A stretch of DNA of 64,000 nucleotides, from contig MU619265.1 of NCBI GenBank assembly GCA_025201805.1, positions 179,394 through 243,393 on the forward strand, written 5' to 3'. Made by a program: the position numbers and the translations under genes. Positions 28,428 to 43,169 of this stretch are shown here, piece after piece; the stretch's first letter is position 1; every line of letters starts with the position of its first letter. Below the pieces are notes generated by a model. That model did no database searches, was not told the DNA's origin, and was given only the letters and a program-made list of their open reading frames with translations. Origin of the DNA: Parasitella parasitica NRRL 2501 (lineage: Eukaryota; Fungi; Mucoromycota).

Positions 28428-31400
28428 TTGCAATTTCGAATTTGTCTTCTACGCTCAATTGTACACTGCAGAAAGAAAAATAGAGACTATGATGAGCTGT
28501 ATATCTATTTATTGAAAAGTATTAGAATACTTAAAGGTGTAGTGCAAGAGGCAGAAGCAAAAATCAAGGGTCCAGGAAAAATCACAACGATGTTAAGCAC
28601 CGTGTATACACAGAATAAAAAGGCTGAAAGTCTAAAAAAGGATTATGAGTACTGGAAAGAATCTGTAGAGAAGAACTTCCAGTCTCTTTTGGATTTACCA
28701 GAAAAGGATGATGGTAGCAATGATGATAAAGACAGTGAAGATAGCGAAGATGAAGACAGTGATAAAGCGACTCAAGATGACACTGAGCAATTTCGCGCAT
28801 GCTCAACTTCTTTAAGTCAAGTGCTCAGGGACGACTTGCCAGACGACATCAGGTTGTTATTCATCAATACAATCGGTGCTACCATGGAGCAAGTATCTAA
28901 TTGTACCTCTGACTTCAGCAAGCAGGTTCTCAAAGTCGCTCTGTTGTTTGCTGAGTATACATTTGAATCTAATGACAGCAACATTGAACTTGTCTACGAT
29001 GGTGGAAACAACATTGCGTCAATACTGCCAGAAGGGTATTTAGAGGAATACATCACTGTACCAAAGCCATTAGATTCCAGCTCTCTCCAGAATGACGAGT
29101 TCAATGCTCACTATCAATCGCTGTTTCTAGAACCCCACTTGGAACAAATGCACTCAACATACTATGGTCAAATGGGTATTGAAGAGTCTACCCTTGAAAA
29201 GTCGCCTTCGCACAAGGCAATTGTAAACGTTTTGGGCCGTGACGAAGCCAACCCACATCAAAATTTGTCCTCGCACATTATGAAGATGGCTCGCCAACAG
29301 TATTACACGAATCTTCGTATTATGTGGTCCGAAAATACTATTGTCAACAAGCTACTTAGAAAGCTCTTGAACTTCTTGCTGTTGATCCATTTATCTCCCG
29401 ATCAAGACCATGCTATCAAGGCGAAGAAAACTGAAAGAGAATCGGCCAAGCTCCGAAAAAACCATAAAGGCAAATAGAGAGTAACAAATTGCAGTATCCC
29501 AATGGCAGAAATTTCAGTGTTAAAGAAGACAAGAAATGGAAGACGAAAGCTGTTTTCTGATGAAAAGAAGCCAAAAGCCAAGTATGAAGAAAAGGAAAGC
29601 ATGAGGCAGCAGACATGTGCCAGACGAGAATCGATAAATATGAGCAAGTACTTTATAGAGAGGTAGGGGTCGTCTAGTTTTCAAAGGAAGACATAGTGTC
29701 GTAACTCGGAATGTATGTAGCAAGCGGAAAGGGTCAGAAATCCAAGACAGCAGCAGCAGCAGCAGCAAAAACAAGGAAAGCGTCAAGAAAGCGTTACTGA
29801 TGATAGAGAGGACTACGAGAAAGGGAACAATACCAATGTATCTAGAAAAAGAATCAGTCAGTTAGGCGACATTCCAAGATCAACATTGTTTGCCACGCAA
29901 GATATCACAGACGCGTACCTCCAAGATCAGGATGAACACATCACCACACAAGAATCTGTAACAATCATCAAAATTTCTAGCTTCATTCGGCCATACATAC
30001 CATCAAGCGAGACTTATCATCTCCTTCCATGCCAACTCAAGTTCATCTTGATGGCAAACCAAGTACTGCGCTCTATTGGCTATGAAGGCCAAGTTGCTAA
30101 ATTTCTTCCAATAGTCAGACCCACTACTTTGCATGCACTTCTTATTGACACAACGACCCTGTATGCACTTTTCTGCTCGAGCAAACTTTCAAAACGGATG
30201 TATCTTCGAGACTTTCAAGGCAATTACGTAAAGCATAAAGACACCAACGCAAAAAAAGATGCCGTCTTTAGCAATTTCTTTAACATTGAGAAACTAAAAA
30301 GCGTGACATCAAGCTATGGGATGGAGTTCATAAATAGAATACACATCTTACCAGGATCGAAGACTGTTAGATTGTATGGCAGCATTGGACATTTCAAGTC
30401 TAGTCGCAGGAACCCAGAAACAAAAAAAGCAAGCTGAGCCATCATACAGATGACGACTAGTTACGAGCTATGAAGGCTCAAAAGAAGGAGCTCGATAAGT
30501 CACTCAGGGATCGCACAAACGAATTCTATCAGTTTCTTCAAGACAACGACAGTGTTCGTGGCCTCAAGAAAGCTTGGAAAACCAACTTTGAAGAACAAAA
30601 ACAATGTTATGAGAAAGTCGAAGATGCCCAAGAAAGGGACAAAACTTCTGATCTTACGAAGACTTGGAAGGCTAAAGTTGAAGAAAACGACGAGCGCTAT
30701 CGGAATGTGGAATCAGTAAAGTTAAGGATTAATGGTGGCTATTCGAGATACAAAAGAGAGGCTTCAGTCCCTGCGGCGAGAGATTTATGAATATGGAAAA
30801 CCTTTAGTGAATGATTTGAAAACTCTAATACCATTTAAGCCCTTCACTGTGGGTAGCAATAGATGCTGTAGAAAGGTAGAGGAATGCAAGCTGGACGAAG
30901 ACATGGATCGGACAACAGCCGTGTTCAGTGGCACGGATAATGGCATTATAAAGACTACCGAGATAGTGTTTTTTGAAGTCGATCGTTTCGCACCACACTT
31001 GAAGCTGTACAATAGGTTTCAGATCTTGGGTATGTAACTCAATGCCTTTGAACACATATGTATATAGTTAAAGAAACTGATTCTATATATGTTTGCCTAC
31101 TATAGAGGATACCAAAGATGCAGACAATGCTGATGGTTCAAATACAGATGAAGCTGATATTTTTGAACACTTGACTCTACCTCGCGCTCTCACTTTGGGC
31201 TCCAAGCAAATCAACCAGATACCGGCTTGGCTATATTTATAAATTCGTTTATTCGGAAAAAAAAGACCACAGAAGACAGGTACAGAGTTTTGGAGATGGA
31301 AAAGGATCTTGGAAAAAAATAGTCTTTATCAATGCTCAACATCTGATGGTTTGGAGCAAGCCTATTCGCATCACACTAATGCGCGCGCATCGTTGCGCTC

Positions 31401-31980
31401 ATTCTATTACAACCAATCCATGATAAAAAGAAGAAGACGGCTGGAACTCTCTTACAGAAAAGGCTCTGACAGACTAGCAGCTTACGAGAGAAAGAGTTGT
31501 TGCAAGAAGCCGATTATGTTTGTCGGTGATCGTGGACACGGATTCGGCTCTCGCATCAAGGGACACAGACAATTTGGTGGGTTCTGAAAACAGCAGCGAC
31601 ATAGCCGCTATACACCAACTCTGATAACAAATGCACATAATACGTCGCAAACATGTGTTTTCTGCTTCTACAAGCTCTCTCATCCTGTGGCTGCTCTCAA
31701 TGGCAAAATACAGCGAACAGCCGGTTCATTTCTTTTCTTAAATCCCGAATGCCCCAATGCTTTCAAAACAATGTGCTGCGACCAAGTCCCAGCACTTGCA
31801 ATTGGTCTTGCTGATTTTGGTTGCCTTTTGTTTGGAGTAACTTTCCCCTGCTTCGACCCAAACCCCACCACATGCCAAGCGCACACAATTCAGCAATTTG
31901 GCCCTATCTTTTTTGTACAGAAAACAGATACTGGGCTCGCCTTTCGATGGAGGCAATACTCTTTGAAGGTTAGTAAATAA
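28428..31980 (+). pseudogene. Degenerate Fanzor (eukaryotic TnpB-like RuvC nuclease), copy 1
   Basis: Fragmented ORFs homologous to 39125-42830: SLSQVLRDDLP, LLLIHLSP, FIRPYIPS, FILMANQVLRSIGY, RuvC-I FSGTDNG, MFVGDRGHGFGSRIKGH..FGG, LITNAHNTSQTCVFC, NPECP..DQVPALAIGLA. Multiple stops/frameshifts and a catalytic E to A change. Introns at 29663-29720 and 31030-31105. A degraded N-terminal exon may lie at ~27860-28070. Confidence 0.88.
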
Positions 31981-32140
31981 ATATAAAACGTGGAGATAAC
32001 TTAATATTAATCGAGCGCTACATCTTTGACTTTGACCTTTTAATACTATTGGGTAAGTGACATTCCCACTTATAAATTGTTTATAGAAAGTAACCAAAAT
32101 CATCTGTTTCTTCTTTCGGAATTTAGCTTGCTATACCGTT
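31930..32140 (+). ncRNA. Candidate omegaRNA region of Fanzor copy 1 (boundaries uncertain)
   Basis: Hairpin gcctttcgatggaggc (31939-31954) at the ORF end, matching the equivalent hairpin of copy 2. This position is typical of TnpB/Fanzor omegaRNAs. Confidence 0.35.
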
Positions 32141-33213
32141 ACAGTATGTGAAATTACATAGCAGTGCTATCTAGCCTGTCTCCAATAATAGTACGGTATG
32201 CATAGATAAATAACGTTTGTCTTTGAAAAAGTGGTGGTAGATGTTGGCTATATGTTACTGAACAACTAAACAATTTGAGAATCAAATCAAAAATGTACAG
32301 TACACTATAGATTGGATATTGGATATTGATTGAAGAGAGTTCATTGCCGCCTGTTAACACTTCAGATTTTTTAAACCAATAACAAGCTCATCTAGCATCA
32401 CACGCCGTGGGATGTGTGTACTTAATTCCACCTAGACAACAATTAATGAAGTGGCGGTACAGACCTTGGGCGCCTGTATGCCAAGTTTGGCAACTTCCAC
32501 TGATGGCTCGTTTTGTCTTGACCGGATAAGATTTTTGCAGAAGCATTGTTTGGTATTAAAATTAATTGTCATTAATCTGGGATGGCCTATGATAATCAGT
32601 ACGTTTATAGTTTTGGTTTCAAGGGGCTGCCATCACCTTTCTCATGGACACCAACTGCTCCTAAATTGATTTAAGACTGCGCCCTTTATGTCTAATGCCT
32701 TTAATCTCGAATACGCGTCGAGTTTAGATGTGGTAAAAACACTGCAGCCCATCATGACAAGGTGACCTATAGGAAGAACTGCCACTGTGTGCATTAACTT
32801 TTTATTGAAGCGCATAATGTGAGAAAATTTGAGAGCGACTCTCTATCAGCTTAACATGTAAAAAGTGTTTTTGGCTCAATATAAACGATGAGTCCCAGCC
32901 AAAAGAGTTTCTGAATAATGATCTTCCAATCTCTTGAGTTTATATGCTCTCACTCATCGAGCTGCGCCAATTAATAGGCAAAGGAAGTATCAAATGTCAC
33001 CATAGCAAATCGAAAATGCCGAAAACTAGTAATCGTATAGTCTTGATGGTTTTTAAAAAAAAACTGATCCATTCAGCTCTTTACATGTCACTTTTGCTGA
33101 AGCTTCTAGCAGTTGAGACACTTGTCCAAGCATTCATAAGAGTGCTGAACAAAACTGTTGAGATCGCCAAGTCTTTATCTTCAAAAGCTTCGCTGTGGAT
33201 TCTCGTCATTAAT

Positions 33214-38048: not shown

Positions 38049-38899
38049 TTTATCTTTCTTTCTATTATAAATATTCCCCATTTTCTCTCTACTTGATTGA
38101 TATGCAGACGACACTAAGCCCTCGCATTTTAATCCTATCTAATTATTAAAATACTTGTAGGCTCATTCTCATCACAGAGCGTTTTGGATAATTTGGAATG
38201 ATGTGGGATATGGTTGACCATATAATCAAGTTTGGTAATTTCGGTTGATTCACTTATAACGGTGGTTCGTGATGAGATATGAAGTAGGCGTTCAGAAGAT
38301 CAAGAACTTTTTTTATAACACATTTCATTCAAATTTCAGATGTTGAACTAAAAAGGTATGTGCTATATCAAAGTTATCTCATAGACCTTTTATGCAACGT
38401 CCCACTCGTAGTATTGGTATCTGAGGTAAATCATTGATAATCCTGATTTACATTCATAGTAAAACCCTTTGTTAGTGGATCTATAGTAATTCTTTGACGG
38501 ATTTGTTTTATTTGACTTTAGACATAACGCTATAGTGTCTTGAGTGGGTCATGTAATAATTTTTACTAACAAGAGTGGTATACAAGTCATTTCAAATCTC
38601 AGGTACAATACCGATCGATTAGAATAATGTACCACTCTTTGCAATGAAAAAAAAAGCTTACCAAACCTAAAAGATATAACTAATTCTGACCTCACAGAAT
38701 TTTATATATAACTTTATCCCTTGGTAAATCTTTTTTATGCGGAAGAATCCCCTTCAAATTATGCTCAGAGTCAAAACAAACAACACCTACATCTCAGACC
38801 ACAAACAACTACATAATGCAGGCAATATGTTTATTTGAAAGTAAGGACTGTGATTCGGTGGAGTAATGCTTTCAAATGACAAGAAATTCACAGCGCAGG

Positions 38900-39130
38900 A
38901 AACCATAATACTGATAGAGTAAATGAACTATGAGACCAAGCGAAAGCCACAATATTAAGACCGTTAATAAAAAATAGCGCAAAGAGTAATTGCATACATA
39001 CCAACAAAAGAGATGGTTATGTTGTAAAAAAATTATATAGAAGAAAAAGAGAATGAGTTTCTGATAGTAATAAGCTTTATAGAGTTTCTGAATTTACCGA
39101 ATATAGCCCTCATCGAGGGCAGGCCTATAT
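38900..39130 (-). ncRNA. Candidate omegaRNA region of Fanzor copy 2 (boundaries uncertain)
   Basis: Perfect hairpin GCCCTC-GAT-GAGGGC (39120-39106) 4 nt after the annotated stop; homologous to the copy 1 hairpin. Confidence 0.4.
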
Positions 39131-42100
39131 TTTTTTCTTGTTAAGAAAGACATCAGCAAGTTTGTTGAAATTGTCAGTTCTTGAAAAACTGGTTTTTGCG
39201 TCGAAGGATGGGAATGTCACGCCGAAGACGAGTTGGGCCACACCTGCCAAACCGATCACAAGAGCACTGAGAGTGTCTCTGTTGTGAGTGATGTGGGCAG
39301 ACTTGACAGAGATACAGTCTTTATTGACACAAATGAATGCACCTTTGACTGTCTTGACTTGGGTTTGGTCGTTGTCTCGTACGACACGTAACGGGTGAGA
39401 GAGCTTACGAAAGCAGTATGGGCAAGTCTGGGATGTATTATGCTCGTTTGTGTAAAGTACCGAAGAATACAGGCTATTCTTTTTGGGCTTCCAGTGACCA
39501 CCATAACGCAAAAAGCCTTTCGTTCGTGAACCAATACCAAGCCCGCGATCACCTACAAACATAACAAGGCGCTTAAGCCTTTTGTCTTCTTCGACGATGC
39601 AATGATTTCGTTCAGCGGAGCATAATTTATCAATGAATTTTCTTTTCCGCAACTCGTATTGTCTCTTCTTTTTTGCAAGGTGAGCAGAGTTGTAGAAGCT
39701 TCGGACCTCCTCAGCACGACTAAACTGTTTGTTCTCCCAGACAAGTAATTCATCAATCGTGTTGACGTCGGATAGGCTCACACTGCTCAAGTCGGCTTCA
39801 ACATCAAACATTCGACTACTGCTTTTAAATTTCAATTTCCTTGTATGGGCCTCTAGGGCACGAGCTCCACTCCCATAGCTGATATCTGTGCCATGAACTC
39901 CGAATGACTTTGGCATTTTGAGGAAGGCAGGTACTTGATTTGCATGTAAGCTTATTGATCCTGAAGATAGAGTTAGACAAAAAAAAATAGGCGCATCTAC
40001 TTGAAAATTACCTGTAGCAGGAGATGCTTGTTGCCTATGCAAATTCAAGTGATACAGAAACCTATCCATAGTAAATACCACTGTTTCTGTCATCGTTACG
40101 AGGCCATTATCTGTGCCTGAAAATCGAAGATTTCCTGAATTGAGGAGGTCATCATCAAGCTTGAAGGATGTAACATTGCCGAGACACTTGAAATTTGTCT
40201 GGCTGATAATATGCTCTTCTTGATCTTGATCTTTTGTAGCAGAGTCAAAACATTCTTGATACATTCGTTGTCTAAAATTTGCTAGCCTCTCTTTACAACC
40301 TAACAATCTTTGATTGATTTCATCCCTTGTGTTTTTCAAATGTTGAATTTGCGTATACAAAGATGTCTGATTTTTNNNNNNNNNNNNNNNNNNNNNNNNN
40401 NNNNNNNNNNNNNNNNNNNNNNNNNNNNNNNNNNNNNNNNNNNNNNNNNNNNNNNNNNNNNNNNNNNNNNNNNNNNNNNNNNNNNNNNNNNNNNNNNNNN
40501 NNNNNNNNNNNNNNNNNNNNNNNNNNNNNNNNNNNNNNNNNNNNNNNNNNNNNNNNNNNNNNNNNNNNNNNNNNNNNNNNNNNNNNNNNNNNNNNNNNNN
40601 NNNNNNNNNNNNNNNNNNNNNNNNNNNNNNNNNNNNNNNNNNNNNNNNNNNNNNNNNNNNNNNNNNNNNNNNNNNNNNNNNNNNNNNNNNNNNNNNNNNN
40701 NNNNNNNNNNNNNNNNNNNNNNNNNNNNNNNNNNNNNNNNNNNNNNNNNNNNNNNNNNNNNNNNNNNNNNNNNNNNNNNNNNNNNNNNNNNNNNNNNNNN
40801 NNNNNNNNNNNNNNNNNNNNNNNNNNNNNNNNNNNNNNNNNNNNNGGAGAGTCAAGCTTCAGAGCCAATAGAGAAGTTGGTTTTACAATAGGCACAATTT
40901 TCCTGACCCATTTAGAGTATCCGGTACTTTTAAGGAGATTATTGGCCATCAGAAAAAAAGGAAGTTGACGAGCGACAACAAAAGATTTGCTTCTCTGAGG
41001 TATGAAAGGCGATACAAAATTGATGATAATTAAGCAAACTCTGACTTCGTTATTATCGATATCGGGTAAAGAAGCTTTCAATCTGTCTTCACATTCAGTT
41101 TCAAGTGTTTTTTCGAGGATGATTCGTCGCATTGTTGTTTTTAGAGTATTAATACGACGGCTTGGTAGGTCGGTGGTTGTTTGATTCCCTGAATCTTCCT
41201 CATTTCGCAGTTCTTGTGCAGCAGTCGGGTTGGCGTCAGCTTGTAGTTCTAATTCCGTCTCCTGGTCATCTTTGATTGCAGTTGCTGAATGAATTTCACG
41301 AGCTTGTTTCTAAATTATGTCATCAGTTATAAATGCATATATCTACTATGTATATATATCTTCATTGATAAATTTACCTCCGTGTACAAAACATGTTCAT
41401 ACGTATTAATTCTTTCGCCGCATCGAGTCGCTTTTTTAAACCATTTTATCTGCATTGGGGCGATCATTCATTGCTTTTATCTGATTAGATTCTTCCTGGC
41501 TTCGTTCTTTCTTAAACAATCGCTTTCTTGCATGGTAAGACAATCCAATAAGTAATATATCGTCAACGGGAATAGAGCTTGCGTATTGTTTGACATTACG
41601 AGCATTTTGACGGTCCCTTTGACGATCTAAATAATCTCGTTTTTTAGCCTCACGCAAGGGAGCTAAATGAACACGAAGGAGAGCAAGCAGCAAATGATTA
41701 AGCAGGGAATAGAACGCCTTGTTGTTGGACCACATGTTTAGGAAATAAGTTTTGTATTTCGCCAAAGCCATCTTCATGATAAAGGGATCTGCTTCGATAT
41801 CTGATTTATTTGTGATAGGAAGTGCCGATATTATAGTTTTTTCGATTCGACGGTTGTCCTTTGTACCTTCTCTAATACCAAGTTTACCAAAATATTCAGA
41901 ATGAATACGATCCAAGTGGCTGTTATTAAAAAGTTTATCAAATTCTTGAGTGAAGATTTCATTCGATAGACAATCGCCTGGTAACGGTGGCGGCATTTGT
42001 CCAAACCGCGGATCGAAATGATATCCTGCTGGTAAAACATAGGCAGGATCTGGGCCAGTTTTGGGTTCAAGAGCTACACGATCATTTTCATGCAAGACAA

Positions 42101-42830
42101 AGGATGACGTTTCAAATAGCAAGACGATTTTCAATATCTGTAAGCTGTATCTAATAATGTAGTCTGTAGCATGTGTCGTAGCTTGCGATATTCTATTAAA
42201 AAATTCTTGTCTAATATCTTGTGGTAAATCTTCACGGACAATAGATTCTAAGCTGCAACTGATTGTTCTGACAAATTCTTTATCATCAACATCTTCGAAA
42301 GTAGAAACACTACCAGTTGATTGCTGTTCTGGAGTAAGAGAAGCAGTCGAAGTTTCATTTCCTTTGATTTTTTCTTTGATTTCTTCAGTAAGAGTAACAA
42401 AGTTTTTGTTTATGAAATCTTTCCACAGTTGGATGCCCTTTTTGCCCTTACGAGAAAGTCTGTTTATGTATTTTTCAATTTCCGTTGTTTGTATTGCTTG
42501 ACCATCTATAGTGTTCCGTTTTTCAGCCTCTGTCACTGTTCCTTTCGGTAAAGCCTTCATCGATATAAGCATATCCTTCAAAGGTGATACATCATCTTGA
42601 CCTGATTTGCAGTATGCGTGGATTTGAAACGAGATTCTTCTTCTAAACTCATTTGCATCACGTGAGCCATTCCCTCGACTGCGTTTGGCTGCCGCTTGAC
42701 TAGATTCTGCTACCACTTCTGTTTCCTCAATGGCTCTTTTTTTGCCCATTGATTTCCAGCGTGGAGGAGTGTTTATTTGTGTTACGCCAGGAATATAAGT
42801 TAATCGTTGTTTCTTTTTAGTTCTAGCCAT
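39125..42830 (-). CDS. Fanzor1-type RNA-guided RuvC endonuclease, copy 2 (near-intact; one +1 frameshift near 41445; interrupted by an assembly gap)
   Basis: RuvC-I LRFSGTDNGLVTM; VMFVGDRGLGIGSRTKGFLRYGG; relocated catalytic Glu TNEHNTSQT; zinc finger CPYC...CVNKDC; RuvC-III HNRDTLSALVIG. Introns at 41310-41377 (phase 0) and 39961-40011 (phase 1). About 1,190 aa if the gap size is right. Confidence 0.9.
40376..40845. other. Assembly gap (470 N) inside Fanzor copy 2
   Basis: Run of N. Confidence 1.
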
Positions 42831-43169
42831 TTTTCATCTGCAAAGGTTATAAAAAAATGAAAAGAGAAAGAAAAATGGATTGCAGAATCTTCATTTTTAT
42901 AATGAGAACAAAAGGGTCTGATGCATATGTTTCCTGATTTATCTCTGTGTGAGATAAACAATATCGTTCTTCAATTAGAGGAACAATACGTATTTATCAG
43001 TTAATTCCTCGGTGAGGTTTTTATGTCGTAGTATTTTTTGTTTATATGGAGACCTTGGTCCCGATTTTATTTGAGTGAAATTTAATGCATAATAGCAAAA
43101 CGCAACCTTTTTTTTTATTTTTTTTTAAAGATCAAGTGTATACATGCGGATTATTTTGTTTTTCTTCAA

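Follow-up and report, generated by a model that had tools for sequence, protein, structure and literature searches.

Two Fanzor1-like genes in a sequence from the fungus Parasitella parasitica NRRL 2501 each carry a short hairpin at the 3' end, and this raises the question of whether the hairpin belongs to the omegaRNA that would guide the encoded nuclease, or serves the mRNA, the protein or the transposon DNA instead. Both genes lie in the stretch of DNA analysed here (the window, 64,000 nucleotides), one on the minus strand (copy 2) and one on the plus strand (copy 1), and the positions of their features are collected in Table 1. The original prediction had read the hairpin as the stem of a lineage-specific omegaRNA, with the reservation that the segment might also be coding.

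Table 1. Features of the two Fanzor1-like copies and their 3' regions, in window positions
Feature	Position	Strand	Remark
Copy 2, Fanzor1-like gene, intron-containing	39125-42832	minus	motifs FSGTDNG, TNEHNTSQTCPYC, HNRDTLSA
Copy 2 stop, TAG	39127-39125	minus	followed by GCCT, then the hairpin (4 nt past the stop)
Copy 2 (family A) hairpin, 6-bp stem GCCCTC/GAGGGC, loop GAT	39106-39120	minus	non-coding; GCCCTC 39120-39115, GAT 39114-39112, GAGGGC 39111-39106
AATAC block (alignment A5, columns 27-31; TATAT in family A), copy 2	39105-39101	minus	
Copy 2 first 5'-splice-site-like motif, GTAAAT	39092-39097	minus	8 nt past the hairpin
Copy 2 second 5'-splice-site-like motif, GTATGT	38996-39001	minus	GTACGT in sister copies
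Copy 2 branch-point-like motif to candidate 3' splice site	38928-38970	minus	TTATTAAC 38970-38963, pyrimidine-rich run, TAG 38930-38928
Family-A terminal 20 nt, ending ...TCAGTAT	38908-38927	minus	copies diverge past 38908
Family-A element left end, approximate	43087-43090	minus	similarity to two other copies starts here
Copy 1, decayed family-B Fanzor1-like gene	28428-31966	plus	
TGA stop used by intact family-B copies	31964-31966	plus	
Copy 1 (family B) hairpin, GCCTTT cgat GGAGGC	31939-31954	plus	
Copy 1 hairpin, register shared with other lineages	31941-31945 with 31949-31953	plus	loop GAT 31946-31948
AATAC block (alignment A5, columns 27-31), copy 1	31955-31959	plus	
AATACT block 3' of the copy 1 stem	31955-31960	plus	
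Copy 1 first 5'-splice-site-like motif, GTTAGT	31969-31974	plus	2 nt past the stop; GTAAGT/GCAAGT in sister copies
Copy 1 second 5'-splice-site-like motif, GTAAGT	32053-32058	plus	
Family-B terminal 21 nt	32127-32147	plus	preceded by a pyrimidine run and TAG (32124-32126)

A diverged Fanzor1-like family

To describe the family to which the two genes belong, we used the C-terminal 416 residues of copy 2 in a six-frame search of the genome from which the window is taken (32.8 Mb, 450 contigs), which gave 74 matches. Family A consists of copy 2 and six further copies at about 88-97% identity, family B of copy 1 and some 40 copies, and family C of two diverged members (L028 and L033). Copy 1 is a frameshifted family-B pseudogene, its frame being shifted by a 1-nt insertion near 31878, approximately 60 nt upstream of the hairpin. 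Copy 2 is interrupted by a run of N at 40376-40845, as are most of the other copies by similar runs, and the open frames of 1300-1450 amino acids seen at other loci proved to be artefacts of N runs and not intact genes.

A profile search of 1.84 billion representative proteins returned 1120 related representative clusters, 169 of them at E <= 1e-30, and the named relatives are Rhizopus hypothetical proteins. The Pfam model PF07282 (Cas12f1-like TNB) was matched at E 0.0013 and 19 bits, which is below its cut-off of 26.3 bits; in the scans run here no Pfam match rose above threshold, and this large Fanzor1 clade thus stands without annotation. A look-up aimed at transcript-derived contigs found no record of the family-A protein P0112. 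Neither phmmer nor a profile search built on six members matched the family protein to any PDB chain, the solved Fanzor1 chains being too diverged from it for any HMMER match, and a fold search was therefore needed to place the family. The AlphaFold2 model of a homologue of 713 residues (P0012; mean pLDDT 78.5) had SpuFz1, PpFz1 and GtFz1 as its top seven Foldseek matches in the PDB (E 2.5e-7 to 3.5e-4), followed by Cas12f, CasX and TnpB. The low TM-scores (0.25-0.35) are in line with a flexible protein of several domains.

The three motifs of copy 2, FSGTDNG, TNEHNTSQTCPYC and HNRDTLSA, are conserved across the homologue alignment and were read as the RuvC triad, an assignment made by motif position and not by structural superposition. 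They include a Glu that is followed, after six residues, by a CxxC zinc finger. This is the Fanzor arrangement, in which the RuvC-II Glu has moved to a position six residues ahead of the zinc finger (PMC13565253). On the basis of the predicted fold and these motifs, rather than of curated sequence models, we treat the family as a diverged Fanzor1 subfamily.

Covariation and coding status of the hairpin

The hairpin strings and coordinates quoted for the two copies in the original prediction are exact. The bases of copy 1 can, in addition, pair one register over with GAT as the loop, and this is the register common to all lineages (Table 1). In DNA, the two copies agree at 52% of the last ~370 aligned coding columns and at 64% of the hairpin block, and downstream of it their identity falls to the background level of 38%. 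That stem pairing is kept between them in spite of this divergence had been proposed from the two sequences, and it was borne out as a 5-bp covarying stem across 14 lineages. Folding energies of the single hairpins are ordinary (z-scores of -0.4 to -1.7 relative to shuffles). Since no hairpin is unusual in energy when taken alone, its significance must come from the comparison of lineages.

Gene 3' ends from the same genome were compared with those from Rhizopus azygosporus (L051) and R. microsporus (L052 and L053), from read-archive assemblies (L054, L056 and L142), from ENA metagenomes (L055 and L141) and from three NCBI assemblies (L057-L059). L057 is probably Parasitella, its accession belonging to a series given for P. 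parasitica in published tables. The alignment was anchored on a nearly invariant AATAC block. All lineages have the same layout, with a six-base arm, a three-base loop (GAT, GGT, GTT, GCT or AAT) and a second six-base arm. In the alignment of 12 lineages, 87.5% of the cells were paired, compared to 71.4 +/- 3.1% with shuffled partners (0/500 shuffles), and the covariation score was 0.707 versus 0.35 in shuffles (0/500), values that should be read with the lineages being not fully independent and the register having first been spotted in one of the sequences. Pairing was 31-69% when the partners were slid by 1-3 columns. The five inner pairs were formed in 58/60 cells, and the third pair occurs in six types (C-G, G-C, U-A, A-U, G.U and U.G). 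The sixth pair is formed in just five of the 12 lineages, and we therefore take the conserved stem to be five pairs; a seventh pair is possible in the lineages Rz1 and L056. Adding two more distant lineages gave 83.3% paired cells compared to 64.9 +/- 3.5% after shuffling (0/500), with a covariation score of 0.703 versus 0.332 in shuffles. One of these two additions, L142, forms its own 5-bp hairpin, 5 nt out of register.

A second control keeps the five residues of each lineage and redraws their synonymous codons, and it is independent of where the register was first spotted. With the amino acids thus fixed, 38.5-39.3 +/- 2.6 paired cells were expected and 52/55 were observed (0/20000 trials). 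The clearest single case is L056, in which the peptide ATGGG replaces PFDGG and the stem is still perfect. The covariation that the original prediction called for was thus observed across these lineages, with pairing above both the shuffles and the codon null. Moreover, the inner five pairs in the 12-lineage table include ten G.U cells and not one A.C cell, indicating that the structure belongs to the sense-strand transcript.

With regard to coding, the hairpin falls within the last ~10 codons of the gene in most lineages (...D-x-G-N-T-L*). Intact family-B copies end in ...FLYRKQILGSPFDGGNTL, and the hairpin lies inside their last ten codons (...SPFDGGNTL). In family A, the stop lies 4 nt before the hairpin in all seven copies (TAG in six and TAA in L004), and the length of the preceding A-run is equal in all of them. 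This in-frame stop and the equal A-run length indicate that the family-A stop is genuine and the hairpin non-coding there. In L054, a Logan contig related to family A, the open reading frame ends inside the hairpin in another frame, and the stem has a bulged base. The reservation about coding was consequently right for family B and most lineages, but not for family A, where the hairpin is non-coding, nor for L054, where it is out of frame; a shifted A-run in copy 2, invoked to make the segment coding, is not needed, as the seven family-A copies share both the in-frame stop and the length of the run.

The AATAC block follows the stem in 12 of the 14 aligned lineages, the exceptions being AATAA in C2 and TATAT in family A, in which the block is non-coding. 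Among the aligned lineages, the 13 that have the Asn codon all use AAT and none AAC. The bases of the block thus seem to be constrained at the RNA level as well.

A covariance model of the hairpin block found 54 places in the same genome, 52 of which are Fanzor 3' ends, and no new lineages. Rfam gave no match at E <= 1 in 38700-39400 or 31700-32400. The original prediction called the stem lineage-specific; on the contrary, it is conserved across the whole family, for which the profile search returned 1120 representative clusters. Judged from these alignments, a chance origin of the pairing is disfavoured, and the covariation shows that selection maintains a short RNA hairpin on the sense strand at the 3' ends of Fanzor1-like genes in Mucorales-type fungi.

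From the hairpin to the right end of the element

It had been suggested that a guide boundary might be found where the identity of paralogous copies drops, and such drops are sharp. The family-A copies are alike up to ...CTATCAGTAT and then diverge, which places the right end of copy 2 at 38908, whereas the family-B copies are alike up to ...TATACCGTTACAGTAT before they diverge, placing that of copy 1 at 32147. These ends lie 198 nt (copy 2) and 193 nt (copy 1) past the hairpins, and the distance varies from 130 to 293 nt among lineages. The family-A terminus recurs in the Rhizopus relatives and the family-B terminus in L056, L057 and L059. No terminal inverted repeats were found in the family-A element, and the flanks of three left ends gave no consistent reading of a target-site duplication or TAM.

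In the same genome, the terminal motif of 16 nt has 22 exact occurrences and 15 that differ by one mismatch. This motif, TATACCGTTACAGTAT, also ends stretches that lack a Fanzor gene upstream (L063, L065, L070, L071/L073, L074, L077 and L079), and overall the terminal 16-25 nt are common to elements without a Fanzor gene nearby. In L065, the motif is preceded by a decayed open reading frame whose C-terminus may resemble a Pif1/Helitron-type helicase; a Pfam scan of this 115-residue fragment gave no match. Fanzor elements may thus share their ends with another transposon family. At two further loci, L066 and L068, no more than the final 100-130 nt of this 3' region of family B remain, placed behind unrelated DNA. 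The hairpin is lacking there, and these loci are either 5'-truncated insertions or non-autonomous derivatives. As copies without a Fanzor gene and derivative copies carry the same terminus, transposition by itself would suffice to explain why the terminus is conserved.

As for the stretch from hairpin to terminus, consensus folding of its last ~110 nt in two clades revealed no helix that is conserved or covaries, a weak negative since the MAFFT alignments of this diverged DNA are crude. Single-sequence folds of the whole 3' region gave z-scores of -0.9, +1.5 and -2.0. A second hairpin considered at the mid-region GTAAGTGA forms in family B and has no consistent partner in other lineages. Within these alignments, the hairpin at the end of the gene is the sole covarying structure between the open reading frame and the right end.

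What the stretch does contain are signals that look like those of splicing, two of which keep a nearly constant distance, one to the hairpin and the other to the right end. A donor-like motif (GTAAGT, GTAAGC, GTTAGT, GTAAAT or similar) is located 8-15 nt past the hairpin, just after the stop, and a second one (GTAAGT, GTATGT or GTACGT) approximately 100 nt past the hairpin, with branch-point-like motifs downstream of it. A pyrimidine-rich run and a YAG come 20-21 nt before the right end in 10 of 12 lineages. The layout is the same in L051-L059, L141 and L142, with L055, L056 and L142 as textbook cases, and the introns in the coding regions of the same genes have the same signals, at sizes of 52-75 nt. 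Judged by these motifs, the stretch from the hairpin to the end resembles one or two spliceosomal 3'-UTR introns rather than a scaffold. No intron-less or spliced forms were found in the same genome, and a scan of metagenome contigs for a compact or spliced form gave 61 matches that were all unrelated, mostly bacterial-looking coding repeats. In L142 (positions 835-915), the donor GTAAGT overlaps the stop TAG, and a perfect TACTAAC and a CAG acceptor follow ~62 nt on; splicing there would drop the stop and lengthen the protein by a few residues.

Possible roles of the hairpin

The reading that we consider best compatible with these observations is that the hairpin is the protein-binding stem of a Fanzor omegaRNA or of its precursor, which is plausible but unproven and to which we assign a probability of roughly 0.5. 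The solved Fz1 complexes have a 5' stem-loop, SL1, of seven pairs, which is bound by the RuvC and TNB domains and represents the conserved feature of the RNA, whereas the region between SL1 and the guide is variable (PMC11423790). In our family, the hairpin would be the 5'-proximal protein-binding stem-loop, equivalent to Fanzor1 SL1. The gene transcript would run past the right end of the element (38908 in copy 2 and 32147 in copy 1) into flanking DNA, which would serve as the source of the guide, and the nuclease would hold the hairpin together with the last ~20 nt of the element. Between these two parts lies a variable stretch of 110-270 nt, which would either be tolerated, as in other Fz1 omegaRNAs, or be spliced out. 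It is because the position, strand, conservation and uniqueness of the hairpin all fit SL1 that we favour a role in the omegaRNA. Of the original proposal, a covarying sense-strand stem that is not explained by coding alone, located at a Fanzor1-like 3' end and facing a sharp right end, stands, while its restriction to one lineage does not.

The likeness to the SL1 of SpuFz1, PpFz1 and GtFz1 (PDB 8GKH, 9CF0 and 9CER; PMC11423790) is considerable. Here, as there, a small 5'-proximal hairpin is the sole conserved RNA element, after which come a variable region, the right end of the transposon and the guide (in our family, the putative guide), and the predicted fold of the associated protein is the same. 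The two SL1s of the Parasitella omegaRNAs likewise differ by compensatory changes. There are also differences: SL1 has 7 bp and a loop of 6-9 nt, in contrast to five conserved pairs and a 3-nt loop here, and the scaffolds of SpuFz1 and PpFz1 measure about 55-75 nt, whereas our hairpin lies in or at the end of the open reading frame, 130-293 nt from the right end. Sharing of bases between RNA structure and coding, with constraint on synonymous sites as a consequence, has precedents in the TnpB of ISDra2 and in GtFz1, the omegaRNA of which overlaps 17 C-terminal codons (PMC10432273). In those systems the overlap was mapped by sequencing, and here it is suggested by covariation. Several findings weigh against the omegaRNA role. 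The stem is short (five pairs, with six or seven in a few lineages) and far from the right end, the derivatives L066 and L068 lack it, the terminus recurs in elements with no Fanzor gene nearby and may owe its conservation to transposition, and the hairpin of L142 is out of register. Furthermore, the spacing of the hairpin is tightest to the donor-like motif (8-15 nt), an arrangement that fits a role in the mRNA or in splicing equally well.

The strongest rival follows from this last point. It holds that the hairpin is an element of the mRNA near a splice donor in the 3' UTR, where it would tune splicing, the fate of the 3' end or translation termination, with any omegaRNA confined to the sequence nearer to the right end; we regard this as possible, though on the doubtful side. 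It would account for the module of hairpin, AAUAC and donor that is kept at constant spacing in 11 of 12 lineages, for donor-like motifs that vary as real donors do (GTAAGT, GTATGT, GTACGT, GTAAGC and GCAAGT), for the signals and sizes shared with the coding-region introns of the same genes, and for the derivative copies in which the hairpin is missing. However, the last ~110 nt, having no conserved structure, would then leave no candidate for the protein-binding stem that every solved Fz1 has, and family A combines a weak first donor (GTAAAT) with the strongest hairpin. To our knowledge, moreover, no known mechanism needs such a hairpin beside a splice donor.

The splice-like signals may also be reconciled with the omegaRNA role if the guide RNA is encoded by a split gene, such that removal of introns from the 3' UTR joins the hairpin module to the last ~20 nt and the flanking guide. 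This proposal is tentative, and we consider it rather unlikely. It was suggested by the spacing, which would become regular after intron removal: in 11 of 12 lineages, 28-40 nt would then separate the hairpin from the guide, similar to the 34 nt of the PpFz1 omegaRNA, whereas the genomic distance ranges from 130 to 293 nt. Splicing out one or two introns would give a compact scaffold of about 45-55 nt; omegaRNA maturation would in that case include a splicing step, which might also act as a switch between mRNA and guide. Against this, the PpFz1 omegaRNA itself carries CAGGTAAGC...AAACAG unspliced, and donor-like motifs can therefore be part of a scaffold. A direct pairing of the AAUACU block with the terminal AGUAU was the best duplex in four lineages, but it was no better than in shuffles. 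Both published Parasitella omegaRNAs contain CAGGTAAGC and a scaffold end AAACAG, which are donor-like and acceptor-like, respectively, and lie ~23 nt apart. As a speculation, donor-like motifs may be general in the Fanzor guide RNAs of Mucorales, for instance as U1 binding sites.

Two other explanations fare considerably worse. The hairpin might act as single-stranded DNA in transposition, as the subterminal hairpins of IS200/IS605 or the ends of Helitrons do, and both the lack of terminal inverted repeats and the terminus common to Fanzor-less elements would agree with such a role; nevertheless, we hold it to be very unlikely, given that the hairpin lies far from the end, at distances that differ between lineages (130-293 nt), that pairs of the G.U type occur on one strand only, and that the hairpin is absent from Fanzor-less elements and derivative copies with this terminus. 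Hardly credible is the notion that the lineages share no more than a conserved C-terminal peptide (...P-x-[FVL]-D-x-G-N-T-[LF]*), whose codons happen to pair, for although this tail recurs in many homologues and the loop is usually the Asp codon GAT, the observed pairing exceeded the synonymous-codon null in 20000/20000 trials, the stem is kept in family A, where it is not translated, and in L054, where it lies out of frame, the residues vary (FDG, VDD, TGG, SVG and SGG) with the pairing kept, and the Asn codon is AAT wherever it is present in the alignment.

Fanzor1 proteins are of interest as compact eukaryotic genome editors, yet no more than a handful have a defined guide RNA. For the omegaRNA reading, the covarying hairpin and the mapped right ends provide concrete and testable omegaRNA boundaries for a large family. 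A parallel for the splice-like signals exists in IStrons, bacterial IS605/IS607 elements with a group I intron, TnpB and an omegaRNA (bioRxiv 10.1101/2023.11.20.567912), which also have splicing signals and a guide RNA in the same 3' region of the transposon, so that splicing and guide maturation could interact; the candidate signals described here differ in being spliceosomal and inside a 3' UTR. If introns of the 3' UTR were indeed removed during maturation, this would be, as far as we found in the literature, the first guide RNA of its class to depend on the spliceosome, and it would represent a eukaryotic counterpart of the interplay between splicing and guide formation in IStrons.
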